Made by a program: the position numbers and the translations under genes | Part shown: positions 1 to 29,955 of the stretch, one piece after another | How the letters are laid out: each line of letters opens with the position of its first letter | Numbering within the stretch: position 1 is the stretch's first letter | The notes under the pieces: model-generated | The model's input: the letters and a program-made list of their open reading frames with translations, nothing else | The model's database searches: none | Told to the model about the DNA's origin: nothing | Assembly: GCA_033442325.1 (NCBI GenBank) | Contig: JAWQFM010000024.1 | Location: 1,140,490-1,174,306 of the forward strand | DNA from: Salpingoeca rosetta | Lineage: Eukaryota > Protista > Choanoflagellata | Length of the DNA stretch: 33,817 nucleotides | Reading direction: 5' to 3'

Positions 1-110
<110 letters not shown>

Positions 111-114
111 ACAG

Positions 115-239
115 GGTCGGCGCAAGTGACGCCATCTGGAGAGACAAGGGCAAACTGCTGGTACGGCTATCAGTGCCGCACACAACACAACCGGCCCCAT
201 CATGCAGTCCGCTTCAACCACGTGTGCGATCCAAGATGA
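115..239 (+). CDS. Terminal exon of a gene entering from the left; encodes a CHFR-type PAR-binding zinc finger (PBZ)
   Basis: After ctgacAG, the frame starting at 117 reads SAQVTPSGETRANCWYGYQCRTQHNRPHHAVRFNHVCDPR* (TGA 237-239). The C-x5-C-R-T-Q..H-H-A-x2-F-N-H-x-C pattern matches the CHFR C-terminal PBZ as I recall it (RPDCYWGRNCRTQVKAHHAMKFNHICE). Too short for the ORF track. Confidence 0.75.
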
Positions 240-957
240 TCCGTGGTTGGCGGTGGAGATGGTTGTGCTGTGAGTCTGCTCATGCTTTGGTGCTTGGTTT
301 TGTGTGTGTGGCGTCATCGTTGCTCTTGTCACATGGTCGTAAAATGTACACCCAACGAAGTGAGATTGAGTGAGTGGAGTGAGGGTTGAACACACGGCAG
401 ATACACGCACAGACAGAGCGAGAGAGAGTTCAGACACACACACACACTCTCTCACCCAACCCCTCCCAAGCAAGCAAGCACAACACCCAAGCACCACAAA
501 AAATTGATTGCTTACGCCAGCAAAAGCCTCCAATGCCGATTATTAGAGGCTATCTTTAACCAATTCTCCGCTGGCGCTTTGCACCATCGCCGACCTACCA
601 CCGTTGTTGCACACACACACGCACTCTCACGCCACACACACACACCAGCAGCACTTCCTTTGTCCTTCTTCCTCTTCTGCTCTGTTTTGGTTTTGTGTGT
701 GCGTGTGTATGCTTCCGCTGTCATCCACCGCCCAGCCAGCCAGCCAGCCATCAGCCGCCTACCTCCACACCTGTTGCTGCCATCCATCCCATCCCTCGCT
801 TGACCCGCTACCACGGTTCCAACGGTGCCTTGCCTTGCCTTGCATCCCCCTTTTTTTTTTCCTTTGCACACTGTGTCCACCACAACCCCACAACCACAAC
901 CACAACCACGGCACACGCACGGCAACCCAGAACACCAAACAACTGCAACCGACAGCG

Positions 958-1093
958 ATGCGGTTCCACGTGCGAACCCCAGTTGTCATGTTGCTGATGG
1001 CCCTGACAGTCCTCACGGCGAGTGGGCTTCTCTCTCAAGCCGCACCAACCAACCCCCGCGCCCTGGCCGCACGCAGCAGAAATGGCCATGCGG

Positions 1094-1127
<34 letters not shown>

Positions 1128-4100
1128 CCTCGAGTTGGACAATGGCCGAGACAATGATGATGCCCCGTCGCAGCGTCTTGTCGCCACCATGATCTTGGAC
1201 GTTGCTGCCGTTGCTGCCAGGCACGGGGTTACAGCACAGGCGGCTGCGAGCGCCTCCAGTGCGGACAATGACGCTGATGCAACCACTGCCAGCGCCGACG
1301 ATGACGAGAGAACATCGCGTTGGGGGTCCTACCATCGCCGCTTCAACTGGCAAACTCACCACGACCGCCAGCCTCACCATGAGTACCACCACCATCACGA
1401 CCACCACGATCGTCACTTTGACCACCACCATGAGCCACACTCCGACCATCACAGCGACAACGATGCCAAATCCACGTCCACATCATCATCAACATCAACA
1501 ACATCATCAACAAGCACAAGCTCAACAACTACCACGACGACAAGCACAACAACCACCACCACCACCACAACAACAACTACAACCACAACAACCACCACAA
1601 CAACAACTACAACCACAACAACCACCACAACAACAACTACAACCACAACAACCACCACCACAACCACAACAACAACAACAACCACAACCACAACCACAAC
1701 CACCACCATCCGGGCGCCTGATGTGCACACGGACGACGATAAGCCGACGCACCGTCCACTCGGTCCCTACGGCCCGAGCAACTCGTCTTCACCGTCCGCA
1801 CCGCGAGCGCCGCCGTACCCGGGCACGGGTCACGCGCCACCGTCAGACCCGTCAAGCGTGCGCTACCCAAACCAGGAAGCGTGGCAGCGGTATTACCAGC
1901 ACTTCAACTGGACAAAGTGGTGGGAGATGCAGCACAAGAGCAACTTGGCATGGCATGGCCACGGCAGGCACCCATATCCCAGCCATCCTGGCCAGTATCC
2001 CGTGAAACCGCAATCCCCACAACCAACGCCGCCTCCCCCTACCTCGACGGCAGCCGCCACCTACACGGCAGCATCAACGACAGACGGCAACAACGGCCAC
2101 CACCGCACGCGCTGGCAGGACTGGCGGTGGCTCACCGGGTTCTTCATCTCTGTTGGCTGCATCTTTGCCCTCACTGTTGGCATCTTTGTGTTTGTGTTCC
2201 GTCGCCTCCCATCATCGTCGACCCCAGCCAACCGCTCCAACAACGAGCACATGCAGCTCCTCGCAGAGGTGCGTGCATGATTTCTGCTCACGTGTGCGTG
2301 TGCATGTACATGCACATGTGCTCGTACTCGTGTGTACGTGTACGTTCGTATAAACGAGTCGATGCTTGTGCGTGTATTGTGTGTGCTTGTGTGTGCTTGT
2401 GTGTGCTTGCTCTTGCGAATAAGCGCCTTTCTTCCTGCGCCACGATTGTCGCTGCACTATTGTGGAACACCTCCTCCCTGCTCACACCACCAACATGTTC
2501 CTACACTCCTCACCACCATCTGCGCCAATGCCCTTCCCCCACATGTCTCCCTCTCCCTTCACTTCAAAACACCTGCCCCCCCCCCCTCTTCTGCAGATTG
2601 CACAGTACGATGATCCCGTGTTTATGCCGGCCACCAAGACGGCTGCATCGGGACCCGCGGCGCCGGTCAACCCAGCCCCGCCCTACGACGTCAACACTGC
2701 AGCAGGCACCACCCACACCATCAGCATCAGCATCAGCAACGGCAACAGCAACAGCAACAGCACAGACAGCGACAGTGAGGCCTGTTTCCAGGGCCTGGTC
2801 ACTGCTGACCACCGCCATCACGATCATCATCAGCAGCGTGATCATCATCACCACGGCCATGACAGCGCGTCGTCGAGTGAGGTTGGCTGCTCCTCGTCGC
2901 CGTGGTCGTCGTCGATTGCGCACTCGGACCCGGCCACTGCAGCCAGCAACAGCAGTGCCGACCACTCCTCACCGGGGCAGCACTCGCACTCGCACAGCAC
3001 AGGCAGTGTTGTCATTGCCATGGATGACACACCATACAACAGCAGCAGCAGCCAGCAGCAGCAACAACAACAGCAACAGCAGCAGCATGCTTCGTTGCTG
3101 CCACTGCTTCCACTTGACCAAACAACAAGGGAGCAGAAGCAGACGAACAGTCAGGCAATGGCGCTGCCCACTTATTTCCGCACAGATGATGCAGACATTC
3201 CCACCATCTCCACGTCATCGTGTTCCGGCGCTGCCAACCCCTCCTCCCCGTCCCCCATCTCCCCTGCTGCCGTGTGGTCTCGCCTTTATTCTCTCATGAC
3301 TGCCCTCTGGCCAGCAGCAGCCACCACCTCCTCCTCATCGCCGACCCACCAGCACCAGCACCAGCACCAGCGCCAACGCCAACACCACTCCCACATCAGC
3401 GGCGGCGGCCGCGGCGGCGGCGCCATCACGGCGGATGTCGCCCAGTACCGCCGGCTGCTGCAGCACCTGTACCCGCGCCACCTGCTCGACCGCGCACACG
3501 CCCACCGCGTCCTGCCGCTGCGCACCGCTGTCCTCCTGGGTGATGTGGACCAGCTGTCCGCCCTTCTCGAGGACACGCCCCCATCTCTGCTGGCGGCGAC
3601 AGATGCTGCGGGCCGCACGCTGCTGCACGAGGCCGTGCTGTCGCGGTCTGGGCTTGACGTTGCGCTCATCGCCATGCTGCTGCGCCACCGCTGCCCGACG
3701 GAGGTGCCCGACCTCCACGGCCGCACGCCGCTCCTGTGCGCCTGCGAGCTGAGCAAACCCGCGGCGGTGCGGGCGATGGCGGCCGGCGGCGCCGACGTCA
3801 ACGCGCGCGACGCCATGCAGCAGACGGGGCTCATGATCGCCTGCGCACGCAACGACGCAGACGTGGCCAGCGCGCTGCTCACCGCGGGGGCAGACAGCGC
3901 ACTGGCGGACGGGCGCGGGTACACAGCGATGCACTGGTGCTGCGCCACGGGGGCGGTGGAGGCCATGACCCGCCTCTCTGCATTCACCAGCAGACTCGTG
4001 GAGGTGAAGACGGGCGCCGGGGACACCTGCCTGCACCTGGCCGCGCGCGAAGCAAACGAGGCCGTCATCAAGGTGCTCATGGGGGAACGTGCGTCTGTCC

Positions 4101-4732
4101 GCGCCGTGCTGCTCACCTCTGTCAACGCCTTTGGGCAGCGGGCGGAGGATGCCGCGGCCGCCGCCAACCACCACGCCATTGCCCGGCACTTGCAGCAGCA
4201 CCGCGTCGCGCTGGAGCAGGACGTGCTGTGTGGACGCATGTCGCTCAAGGACCGCGCACCGCGCCGCCGAAGACACGCGAGCACGCCCGCTGGCGATGGC
4301 GAGGACGATGGCGACGCCGGCAGGCACCTCAGTACGACTCGGCCCGGCTCGAAGGTTGGGCGTGCCATGTACATGCGCAAGCACCGGCACCGCCACAAGG
4401 TGATTTCGCAGCTGCGGGAGACGCGCGTGCGGCACCTGGAGGGGGAGGGCGCGGCCATTGCTGCTGCTGTTGCCGCGCTCAAGGCAGACCGTCACTCCCT
4501 GATGCAGGCGCTGGCTGCCGTCTCGCCAGAGCACCTGCAGCGTCTCAAGGGACGCAAGGCACGGCCAGCAAAGCGACGCGCACTGGCGCTGGTCAAGACA
4601 AATGGATCAGCCGCGCCGCTCTCACCGCCGCTCGCGCCACCACTCGCAGCATCAGTGGCAGCAGCAGCGCACGGCAACCGAGCAACCAAAGCAAATCGCC
4701 GGCGCAGCCTCAGTGGTGCTGCATTTGTCTGA
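958..4732 (+). CDS. Type I single-pass membrane protein: signal peptide, His-rich/poly-Thr mucin-like ectodomain, TM, cytoplasmic ankyrin repeats and C-terminal bZIP-like domain (2 exons, about 1148 aa)
   Basis: Exon 1 is 958-2268 (437 codons), with donor GAG|GTGCGT at 2269 and polypyrimidine acceptor cctcttctgcAG at 2596. Exon 2 is 2597-4732. The phase-0 join fuses ORFs 604..2280 and 2462..4732 (..QLLAE|IAQYDDP..). Signal peptide MRFHVRTPVVMLLMALTVLTASGLLSQA. TM WLTGFFISVGCIFALTVGIFVFVF followed by RR (2128-2199). Ankyrin motifs GRTLLHEA, GRTPLLCAC, QQTGLMIAC, GYTAMHWCC, GDTCLHLAA (about 3520-4200). Basic region plus heptads at about 4352-4513. Confidence 0.75.
1489..1707 (+). repeat. Poly-Thr coding repeat, including three exact 30-bp units (1561-1650)
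   Basis: accaccacaacaacaactacaaccacaaca x3 inside an ACN codon run. Confidence 0.9.
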
Positions 4733-5824
4733 TTGACCGTTGCTTTGTTCGTTGAATTAGCAGCTATAGATTCGCGTACGTTGTAACACGTGTGTGTGTG
4801 TGTATGTACGTGCGTGTGTGTGTGTGTGTGTACGTGTGCGTATTGTGATTTGTTTTGGGTTGGATGAGACTTTTATCTGTTCACAAGGGGTTGTTGATAG
4901 TGGCCGTTGTTGTTGTCATATGTGTGTGCGTGTGCGTGTGTGCGTGTGTGCGTGTGTGCGCAGTGCCCTGCGCGCATGCTGCGCTTCCTTTCTTGACGAT
5001 GACTGTTGTGTTGTTTTGTGCTGTTAATTTGTTTTCTCTCATGTGTGTGTGTGTGTGTGTTTTGTATGGTTTTTTTTTGTTGTTTTTTCTTGCTGAGTTT
5101 GATTCGTTTGACCCATAATTGCTCCCCGTGGCCGTGTTCATCATCCTACCTATTCCGTGGGTGTTGTTGGACATGTGTTGTTCCACGTCTTCTCTCCTTT
5201 GTTCCCTTCCACTGTTCCTGTTTTCTCCTACCCCAGACCTTTCACTCCATTCCCCAGCCAATGATGTTGCTTGCCCCCGCCCCCTTCTGCCCTCTCCTCC
5301 TCCACTGCTGCTGCCGAACTCCTTCTTTGCCCCCTTCCCTCCACCAACATGACGTAACTGATCACGTTTCTGGTCACCTTGATTAATTCTTCCAATACAG
5401 AAAGCAAATCCCATATCAGTTGCCAGTACGTGCGCGTGCGTTTTGTGTGGTGAGCAAGGAAGCACGAGAACTGACTGGCCCGACACACATGTCAAGATAA
5501 CACGACAAAACAGAATGATGCGCAAATGAGCAAACAGGGGCTAACAAAGCGCAAAGCAACGAGGCGGTAAAGGGTAACACAACCAAAAACAAAACAAAAA
5601 CAAGCAAACGCACTGGCACACGACCACACAGAGTGATGTAACCGAGGAACAGAATCATGTCACATTTAACAACAAATGGAAAAACCACAAGCGTCACACA
5701 TCCTTAACAACCCAAGAGCAACAGTGGGTGGATGTAGCGTGGTGCAAAGAACGCAAACTCAACAAAGTCTTGCCAATCCTCATGATCATGATGTGTCATG
5801 TCATGCATGCCGTGTCCTGCCGTG

Positions 5825-28577: not shown

Positions 28578-29955
28578 TCCAATGTTGACGCCCACAGCAC
28601 AGGCGAGGAGAAGAGTGTCGTCGAGTCTCCAACAGCCTCAGCCAGCGCTTGAAACAAGCAGTGAGCACACGAGTCCAGGGTCATCAGAAGTGCAGTCCTT
28701 CTTTGTCGCTCAACAAAAAGCAGCATTACAACAACAACTGCAGCAGCAGCAGCAGCAGCCAGCACAGCCTGCGTCAGGGCTGGAGTTGACGGGTGCTGGT
28801 GACATGAGCTCCCTACCATACAAAGGCCATCATTTGCAGCAGCGGCAACAACGGCAGCAACGGCAGCCGCTCATGTTCAGCCCAGCGTCGCGCACGCCAA
28901 TGTCGCCGCAACTCGCGGCACCGTCGCCAGCACTTCTCCCATTTGCGGCTTCTTCAGTCTCAGCCATGCGCGAGCCGGTTGCACGTGCCCCTGCCCAACC
29001 GGGCCTGAGTCAGGCCACACTGACGCCACTGCCGTTTAATCCTCCTGCACCCGCACCCCAACAGCAGCATCAACATCAACAGCAGCAGCAGCAGCAGTCG
29101 CCGTGGGTGTCGTCGTTGCTCTCAATGATGAGCGCTTCCCAGTCACTGCAGCAGCAGACGCAGCAGCACCAGATGCTACAGGAGGAGCACCGCCAGCAGC
29201 GGCGAAAGCACCAGGGCCGCATCAAGAGCAAACGCTATCGCGAGCGGAAGAAGGCGCTCCTCACCACCTTGGAACACGAGGCCAAGCAGTTGCACCAGCA
29301 ATGTCACCACACGCTTGCACTCCTCGTCTCTCGTGGGCTCGACGTCAACTCAATCATTCAGGTGTGTGTGTGTGTGCGTTTTTTTGCTGTGTTTTGTGTG
29401 TGATGTGTGTGTGTGTGTGTTGTGCCCATCATGTCTTCCTTTCTTCTTGATCCCCCCCCCCCTTCCATCTGCTCACTTCTGAATGGTTGTCCATTGCTGT
29501 ACATGTGTTTGTGTGTTCGTGCGTGCAGACATTCCCGACCCAGCTTGGGCAGCGCGAGTTTCGCGTGCCTTATGTTCGGCAATCGTACTCTGACGAACAT
29601 TTCCAAGCTGTAAGCCCTCTCGCCACATTGCTTTGCCATGGCCTTGAAGTGCTTGCATGCATGCAAGCGGGTTCAATGCACGTGTTGTTATGCCTGCGGC
29701 GGACTTGCTCGGCCATTGCGTCGCTAACGACAGCATCACTCATCCCCGATCATTGTGCAGGATTGTACACGCGAAGGGCTGGCGTTTGCAAATGAGGAGG
29801 AGGCTCGCCATGAGAAAAGCAAGAGGACTTCTCGCTTCTATCGCGCAGAAAAACGGCGTGAAGAGAAAGGTGGGATGTTTGTCTGTGTTTGTTTGTGTGC
29901 TTATATTTGTGTGGAGGGTTCTTTTGGGTATGTGTGTATATGCGTGTGGAGGTTT

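Follow-up and report, generated by a model that had tools for sequence, protein, structure and literature searches.

A choanoflagellate gene for a predicted type-I membrane protein with cytoplasmic ankyrin repeats and a bZIP-like tail

Locus, transcript and predicted protein

The window, a stretch of 33,817 nucleotides (nt) of the choanoflagellate Salpingoeca rosetta (contig C24:1140490-1174306 of the assembly searched, 55.4 Mb in 68 contigs), holds near its beginning, on the + strand, a gene that we call the receptor gene. Its spliced product is predicted to cross the membrane once, with a mucin-like stalk on the outside, and to carry ankyrin repeats and a basic, zipper-like tail on the cytoplasmic side. 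An earlier note, made from the letters of the DNA, had drawn one protein from two open reading frames (ORFs) at this place and had described it as a Notch-like receptor with a built-in basic leucine zipper (bZIP).

Both frames, ORF A (frame of 958..2280) and ORF B (2462..4732), lie on the + strand and are individually open. RNA over 500-5500 was taken from two stranded RNA-seq runs of 2026 (X21 and X22) and from the contigs of two older runs (X12 and X14), and once mapped it shows a GT..AG joint 2266->2595 that skips 328 nt and whose cut, moved by +2, corresponds to an intron at 2269-2596 (GTGCGT...CTGCAG, phase 0). The resulting 2268/2597 junction is supported by six stranded reads in each of X21 and X22 and by one contig in each of X12 and X14, that is by four runs from three studies, and the first mates of the junction reads lie on the - strand, which places the origin of the RNA on the + strand. 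Indeed, a single 906-nt record of X12 spans 1849-2266 and 2595-3033. The phase-0 intron by which the earlier note had united the two ORFs, and which it had proposed to look for in RNA-seq data, is thus borne out by spliced RNA, and the mapped RNA shows no further GT..AG joint over 500-5500. The spliced coding sequence (958-2268 and 2597-4732) amounts to 3447 nt and encodes 1148 amino acids (aa) with a single, terminal stop.

The RNA depth of the + strand is unbroken from ~700 to ~5340 except over masked repeats, which include the Thr stalk (1474-1707); it amounts to 37-105x at 5009-5342 and drops after ~5340. On the 5' side, the depth shows a trough (~1-2) at 500-666, RNA contigs start at 763 (X14) and 780 (X12), and the only ATGs between 650 and 960 are those at 709 and 958 (none in any frame at 710-957), so that the observed mRNA has its first AUG at 958. 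A trypanosomatid origin with trans-splicing at the AG of 2595-2596, suggested by TG/CA repeats and a polypyrimidine tract, is ruled out by the cis-spliced reads and by the S. rosetta origin of the sequence. Two further observations concern the mapped RNA. A joint 893->2894 between opposite strands, with sides of ~20 nt and loose ends at 911 and 2914, is found in 51 and 140 reads of two raw runs and in an X12 contig; it probably stems from an abundant transcript from elsewhere that has common ACC/CAC-rich words, and not from a rearrangement. A spike of contig depth at 2671-2837 (665-726x vs ~5-10x), with G>A at 2741/2742 and situated over an AGC/AAC-rich stretch of low complexity, is likely due to cross-mapping from other loci.

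Calls of the signal peptide and of the transmembrane (TM) helix were made with a Kyte-Doolittle (KD) hydropathy heuristic, which finds two hydrophobic segments only in the 1148-aa protein, aa 7-27 and aa 391-414. The ectodomain (aa 29-390) comprises an Asn run, acidic stretches, a His/Asp cluster, the Thr/Ser stalk and a membrane-proximal part, and contains 31 His residues. We infer a type-I topology from the hydropathy and from the mucin-type stalk, which fits since such a stalk is sensible only on the lumenal or extracellular side, and the protein is accordingly predicted to be a single-pass glycoprotein with an O-glycosylatable Thr stalk. Hence the signal peptide, stalk, single TM helix and disordered linker listed in the earlier note are present as judged by hydropathy and composition (Table 1). 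Pfam recognizes no family in aa 1-440 and none in the cytoplasmic linker, and no paralog of the ectodomain was found in the genome.

The ankyrin repeats were detected by Pfam (Ank_2, 1.8e-21), and the AlphaFold model built on a 30-row alignment shows seven helix pairs with a predicted local distance difference test score (pLDDT) of 85-98, so that their presence stands and their number, given before as about six, becomes seven. The same model depicts aa 992-1023 as disordered and aa 1024-1079 as one unbroken long helix (pLDDT 67-88); it supersedes a single-sequence model of aa 806-1148, whose overall pLDDT of 48 made it usable for the tail helix only. Past aa 1079, a short helix is followed by an end that is basic and rich in Ala and Pro; the net charge of the tail is +22. 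Both basic clusters that the earlier note had likened to nuclear localization signals (NLSs) are found in the sequence, at aa 990-997 and 1088-1098. His/Asp clusters of the HHDHH type occur on the predicted extracellular side (1348-1455) as well as on the cytoplasmic one (2809-2874), and His alternates with Arg in the basic helix; the clusters could be metal-binding, or merely low complexity derived from CAC/CAT microsatellites.

Table 1. Coordinates of the receptor gene, of its neighbour and of the second S. rosetta gene (window positions unless a contig or locus is named)
Feature	Position	Strand	Basis or remark
CHFR-like E3 ligase gene	upstream L036:2563-9211 and window 108-238	+	
5' untranslated region (UTR), approximate start	763..957	+	RNA contig starts, depth
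Start codon and predicted signal peptide, aa 1-28	958..1041	+	n-region R/H/R; 17-residue hydrophobic core, KD 1.99; SQA/AP
Extracellular His/Asp-rich cluster, aa 131-166	1348..1455	+	direct reading
Mucin-like Thr/Ser stalk, aa 173-250 (78 residues; 86% Thr, 14% Ser)	1474..1707	+	composition
Pro/Trp/His-rich membrane-proximal ectodomain, aa 251-390; sequons NSS275, NWT317	1708..2127	+	direct reading
Predicted TM helix, aa 391-414, then RR	2128..2199	+	KD 2.64 over 19 residues
Intron, phase 0, GT..AG, polypyrimidine tract	2269..2596	+	junction reads and contigs; junction also in PTSG_12744
Disordered cytoplasmic linker, ~320 aa (aa 415-735), Ser/Gln/His-rich, low complexity	2200-2268 and 2597..3490	+	composition
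Seven ankyrin repeats, aa 736-980	3491..4225	+	Pfam, AlphaFold, Foldseek
Basic cluster RAPRRRRH, aa 990-997, NLS-like	4253..4276	+	within the 976-996 stretch conserved in the Tara ortholog
Conserved basic helix, aa 1023-1050, core YMRKHRHRHKV	4352..4435	+	identity with Tara ortholog; ungapped alignment to the C2 bZIP basic region
Heptad (zipper-like) region, aa 1051-1080; d = L,I,L,L,V; a = V,G,V,R,L	4436..4525	+	heptad reading, AlphaFold helix
Second basic cluster KGRKARPAKRR, aa 1088-1098	4547..4579	+	direct reading; absent from the Tara ortholog
Stop codon	4730..4732	+	reading frame
3' UTR, approximate end	4733..5345	+	RNA depth
Second TM-ankyrin-bZIP gene	C2 about 2192985-2196812; L013:4985-8815	+	one 1276-aa open frame

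The public databases hold this locus in another form. In an exhaustive protein search, the C-terminal 177 aa of the receptor match at 100% the last 177 residues of the 1679-aa model PTSG_12744 (XP_004990757.1, F2UJW4), whose residues 1-793 are encoded by exons that begin upstream of the window and reach into it, the last one lying at 108-221. Residues 1-793 amount to a complete CHFR-like protein in Pfam (FHA, RING, zf-CRD at 2.3e-25 and a weak PBZ), and in its own frame the last CHFR-like exon runs on as FNHVCDPR, which resembles CHFR C-termini, to a stop at 236-238. PTSG_12744 skips from 221 to 1743 by an unsupported-looking junction and so leaves the receptor without its signal peptide, its His-rich region and its Thr stalk. 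It is a chimera of a CHFR-like E3 ligase gene and the receptor gene, which is a separate gene because of the own-frame stop, the depth trough, the contig starts at 763 and 780 and the completeness of the FHA-RING-CRD-PBZ protein. The gene model of the earlier note is thus better than that of the databases, where the fusion gives a wrong annotation of both genes and conceals the receptor's signal peptide and stalk. Window 1-107 is a pure (AC)n microsatellite (~107 nt), presumably intronic, that directly adjoins the last CHFR exon on its upstream side.

The C-terminal tail, its marine ortholog and a second S. rosetta gene

An exhaustive HMMER search with the tail, in sources including EukProt, returned PTSG_12744 and one cluster from Tara Oceans only, with no other choanoflagellate orthologs. 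The Tara Oceans metagenome fragment (P0119, 259 aa; loci L035, which is TARA_SAMEA2622614_METAG-scaffold_123834, and L034) shares 44% identity over 239 aa with the receptor (E 5e-57) and is composed of ankyrin repeats R4-R7 followed by the basic-zipper tail. Identity is distributed unevenly along it, with 44% in the ankyrin part, 62% in the 976-996 stretch around DRAPRR, 13% in the acidic and Gly-rich spacer, 57% in the basic helix and 36% in the heptads, and the core YMRK-x-R-x-RHKV of the basic helix is common to both proteins. The tail is thus not a random extension, as judged by a basic helix that is more conserved than the ankyrin part (57% vs 44%). The Tara protein ends 8 aa past the last heptad, and the S. 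rosetta paralog on contig C2, described below, likewise ends just after its zipper. In a word-indexed protein search, the protein of exon 2 found generic ankyrin proteins only and the tail region found nothing, and a scan of JGI metagenomes with the alignment of the S. rosetta and Tara sequences yielded 33 loci, all matching in the ankyrin part only. The fragment presumably comes from an uncultured relative, since its 3' UTR has TG repeats like those of S. rosetta; by eye, the first ~125 nt of L035 are AT-rich unlike the rest.

Contig C2 of S. rosetta carries a second gene of this layout (Table 1). Its frame reads, in order, a TM helix followed by KRRKQQKRRH, a long disordered linker, ankyrin repeats (Ank_2, 5.7e-33) and a C-terminal bZIP located 4 residues before the stop. 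The latter is a genuine one, with 28.6-28.7 bits for bZIP_1 against a Pfam cut-off of 27.6, the N-x7-R signature, and an hhalign value of 91% versus S. rosetta bZIPs over both basic region and zipper. On the same strand, ORFs upstream of this gene (L013:672-2693 and 2694-5039) encode Cys-rich sequence and a Thr stalk, and are probably the exons of its ectodomain. Both genes therefore present a collinear TM helix, disordered linker, ankyrin repeats and C-terminal basic-zipper, together with a Thr-rich stalk upstream; they differ in that the C2 gene has a Pfam-significant bZIP, a large, Cys-rich ectodomain and a spacer of ~190 aa between ankyrin repeats and bZIP, as compared with ~45 aa in the receptor. 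Around the ~20 other bZIP loci of the genome, no ankyrin repeats were found within 8 kb upstream and no credible TM helix in the same frame. The C2 gene lends indirect support to the architecture proposed for the receptor. A word-indexed protein search with the C2 tail returned nothing, probably because its length window excludes annotated models. Elsewhere in the window, a sub-threshold bZIP match (bZIP_1 22.2 bits, bZIP_2 19.5 bits) is located at 29179-29304 on the + strand, inside an open frame of 891 aa.

Several comparisons connect the tail of the receptor with the C2 bZIP. BLASTP aligns them in an ungapped high-scoring segment pair of 44 aa (E 0.003), and among ten bZIPs tested by Smith-Waterman alignment the C2 bZIP is the best partner, in the same register, of both the S. 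rosetta tail (z 7.5, 0 of 500 shuffles) and the Tara tail (z 4.9, 1 of 500), z-scores that may partly reflect generic coiled-coil similarity since shuffling destroys the heptad periodicity. Searched in six frames over the whole genome, the tail has the C2 tail as its best match in a real coding frame (E 0.13). Together, these comparisons are suggestive of homology but stay short of the usual thresholds. A match at C24:247249-247419 (E 0.016) was rejected, being of low complexity and antisense to, or out of frame with, a + strand gene. At the level of residues, R1031, R1034, R1036 and K1038 align to R-x2-R-x-R-x-K of C2, and L1051, I1058, L1065 and L1072 to its zipper. Furthermore, a motif L-x-A-[DE]-R-x-[SA]-L, with the Arg at an 'a' position, is common to the receptor, Tara and C2 tails. 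The d positions of the heptads (L1051, I1058, L1065, L1072 and V1079) are contiguous with the basic region on one predicted helix. Among named families, bZIP clusters are also the nearest by language-model features (0.81-0.83), which is a weak lead.

A substantial set of results weighs against a bZIP. Pfam gives no bZIP match at E<=10 for the tail, for its 92-aa core or for the tail of the Tara ortholog, and six-frame scans of the genome with PF00170 and PF07716 (E<=10) list ~20 genuine bZIPs and coiled-coil noise of 14-17 bits, without listing the tail. A custom hidden Markov model (HMM) built from 11 S. rosetta bZIPs attributes 7.0 bits to the tail, in the zipper part only, as compared with 19.7 bits for the C2 paralog, and 3.4 bits to the Tara ortholog, a score that 21 of 200 shuffles equal or exceed. 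Profile comparison by hhalign of a two-sequence tail profile with nine S. rosetta bZIPs reaches 9%, again in the zipper only and one heptad off the BLAST register. The basic-region signature N-x2-A-A-x2-[CS]-R is also missing in the register of the paralog, with Arg1026 in place of the invariant Asn, Tyr1029-Met1030 in place of Ala-Ala and His1033 in place of Cys/Ser, so that R1034 is the sole residue kept; the Tara ortholog carries the same substitutions. In this register, moreover, the position of the first zipper Leu is occupied by Arg1044. Finally, the ankyrin repeats of the receptor and of C2 are 29-33% identical, no better than to several other ankyrin genes. A search of PDB sequences with the tail gave nothing meaningful.

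Taken as a bZIP domain, as in the earlier note, the segment 4352-4513 thus fails in Pfam, in the genome scans, with the custom HMM and in hhalign, and the built-in bZIP was overstated for the receptor gene. What stands of it are the basic clusters, the heptad series and the continuous helix predicted for aa 1024-1079. On balance, we lean slightly towards the view that the tail derives from a bZIP of the kind seen in the C2 gene, and our reading is that the receptor may be a divergent member of an undescribed choanoflagellate architecture that joins TM helix, ankyrin repeats and a bZIP or bZIP-like module.

Possible mode of action and alternatives

Taken as a whole, this reading regards the tail as a strongly diverged bZIP-type module and the protein as a membrane-tethered regulator, and we propose it tentatively, as falling a little short of probable. 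We infer the homology of the tail with bZIPs, and every step of the following scheme from cleavage onward. Shedding and intramembrane cleavage would follow either a signal received by the ectodomain or constitutive turnover. They would free the fragment made of ankyrin repeats and basic-zipper, which would pair through its heptads, either as a homodimer or with the C2 paralog, and would enter the nucleus by means of the basic clusters. The genome encodes a presenilin and several rhomboids, which makes a machinery for the cleavage of type-I proteins plausible. On the other side, an exon-wise scan of the genome, itself uninformative on this point, gave no match to nicastrin. That the protein is processed and that a C-terminal fragment acts in the nucleus, including the variant in which it would only heterodimerise, seems to us nearly balanced, with a slight inclination to the negative.

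The alternative that survives best is a surface receptor or scaffold without a nuclear role, in which the ankyrin repeats would recruit cytoplasmic partners and the helix would do no more than dimerise as a coiled coil, its polybasic start binding calmodulin, acidic lipids or some other partner, with neither release nor DNA binding. Scaffolds made of ankyrin repeats and coiled coils are common, and this explanation agrees with the failure of all bZIP profile tests, the loss of the Asn and Ala-Ala residues of the DNA-contact signature, the generic character of the ankyrin block and the restriction of profile alignments to the zipper part. It accounts less well for the fact that the most conserved element of the tail is the basic helix and not the heptads, that the tail finds its best real match, genome-wide, in a genuine bZIP which occupies the same place in a protein of the same architecture, and that basic clusters flank the helix on both sides. 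We consider it a serious possibility, though one that we would not call probable.

A released partner that does not bind DNA is an improbable variant. By analogy with CHOP-type bZIPs, the fragment would heterodimerise with the C2 protein or another bZIP and would modulate or inhibit it, as may be suggested by the heptad register and the L-x-A-[DE]-R-x-[SA]-L motif in common with the C2 paralog, and by a basic-region signature that is degenerate yet conserved; the strong conservation of the basic helix argues instead for a function of its own. Finally, two separate genes, namely one for a small mucin-like membrane protein (958-2280) and one for a soluble ankyrin protein initiated further inside, for example at the ATG of 2624, with a junction that is minor or artefactual, could be imagined from the openness of each ORF and from some reads mapping inside 2337-2503, but this is very improbable and essentially refuted by the junction reads and assembled contigs of the four runs, by the use of the same 2268/2597 junction in PTSG_12744, by the absence of any cluster of molecule starts or ends at 2268-2600 in the mapped RNA, and by the loose ends at 2377/2378 and 2406/2409 that most of the intron-internal reads carry, which indicate that these reads match only a TG microsatellite. 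Transcripts ending near 2300-2500 and a separate transcription start for the ankyrin ORF, by which the earlier note would have recognized two genes, are not indicated by the mapped RNA, and the one-gene model stands.

Returning to the membrane-tethered regulator, a wider proposal, which we consider rather unlikely, is that type-I proteins acting as receptor and transcription factor in one form a small class, not described so far, in S. rosetta and at least one uncultured marine relative. Its members would combine an ectodomain bearing a mucin stalk with a TM helix, seven ankyrin repeats and, at the C-terminus, a bZIP or a module derived from one, and would signal by intramembrane proteolysis without a CSL-like partner. 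If it were true, choanoflagellates, the sister group of animals and their closest living relatives, would unite the surface-to-nucleus logic of Notch and a DNA-binding domain in a single protein. Should the receptor be cleaved and nuclear, direct signalling from surface to nucleus with a Notch-like topology would have existed, or arisen in parallel, outside animals, and would be accessible in a tractable system, S. rosetta being amenable to transfection and editing.

Comparison with known membrane-tethered regulators

Membrane-tethered transcription factors are well known, among them Notch, ATF6/CREB3, SREBP, MYRF and Nrf1. A survey published in 2026 on regulators of transcription that are bound to membranes treats Notch, ATF6 and CREB3L, and deals with choanoflagellates only for MYRF (PMC13294678). 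As the earlier note had supposed of this architecture, the full-text literature search brought up no type-I protein described as having both an ankyrin domain and, at its C-terminus, a bZIP-type module. Soluble regulators that join ankyrin repeats, an NLS and a leucine-zipper-like or basic region exist in GABP-beta and in the fungal bANK proteins of the TOXE type. Their likeness to the receptor is one of layout, and no relationship to them showed in the sequence, no comparison aimed at it having been made: in TOXE the basic region is N-terminal to the ankyrin repeats and the protein is soluble, whereas the receptor has the reverse order plus a signal peptide and a TM helix, and GABP-beta, soluble as well, has no basic region for contact with DNA.

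Other systems share with the receptor the tethering of a bZIP-type module. In the CNC-bZIP NFE2L1 (Nrf1), a membrane anchor lies N-terminal to the C-terminal bZIP, which is released by proteolysis (PMC12285602). The relative position of anchor and bZIP is that of the receptor, but the anchor is an N-terminal signal-anchor of the endoplasmic reticulum with retrotranslocation, and ectodomain stalk and ankyrin repeats are lacking. ATF6/CREB3 (OASIS) and the plant factors bZIP17/28 are membrane-tethered bZIPs activated by regulated intramembrane proteolysis (see also PMC13294678). They are type-II proteins with a canonical bZIP N-terminal to the TM helix, and have neither ankyrin repeats nor a cleaved signal peptide nor a mucin ectodomain; the order predicted for the receptor, namely signal peptide, ectodomain, TM helix, then ankyrin repeats and basic-zipper, is not theirs.

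As for Notch, the earlier note had proposed to set the ankyrin block against that of Notch, and neither the 60 best PDB sequence hits of the block nor its 50 best fold hits include a Notch chain. The best sequence matches in the PDB are DARPins, ankyrin-1/2, NOMPC and tankyrase, and the best fold matches are DARPins, AnkB, gankyrin (Foldseek template-modelling score 0.85, root mean square deviation 2.5 A), EHMT1, Shank3 and MIB1, so that the block appears generic and not Notch-like. Pfam moreover finds no EGF, LNR or NOD domain in the receptor. The term Notch-like consequently does not hold as a statement of kinship and holds, as an analogy, for topology and proposed logic: both are single-pass type-I proteins, by prediction in the case of the receptor, in whose cytoplasmic part a disordered juxtamembrane stretch precedes seven ankyrin repeats and NLS-like clusters occur, and the release of an intracellular domain is, for the receptor, a proposal. 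A further difference would lie downstream, since Notch itself has no DNA-binding module and needs CSL, whereas the receptor may carry in its own tail a module derived from a bZIP.

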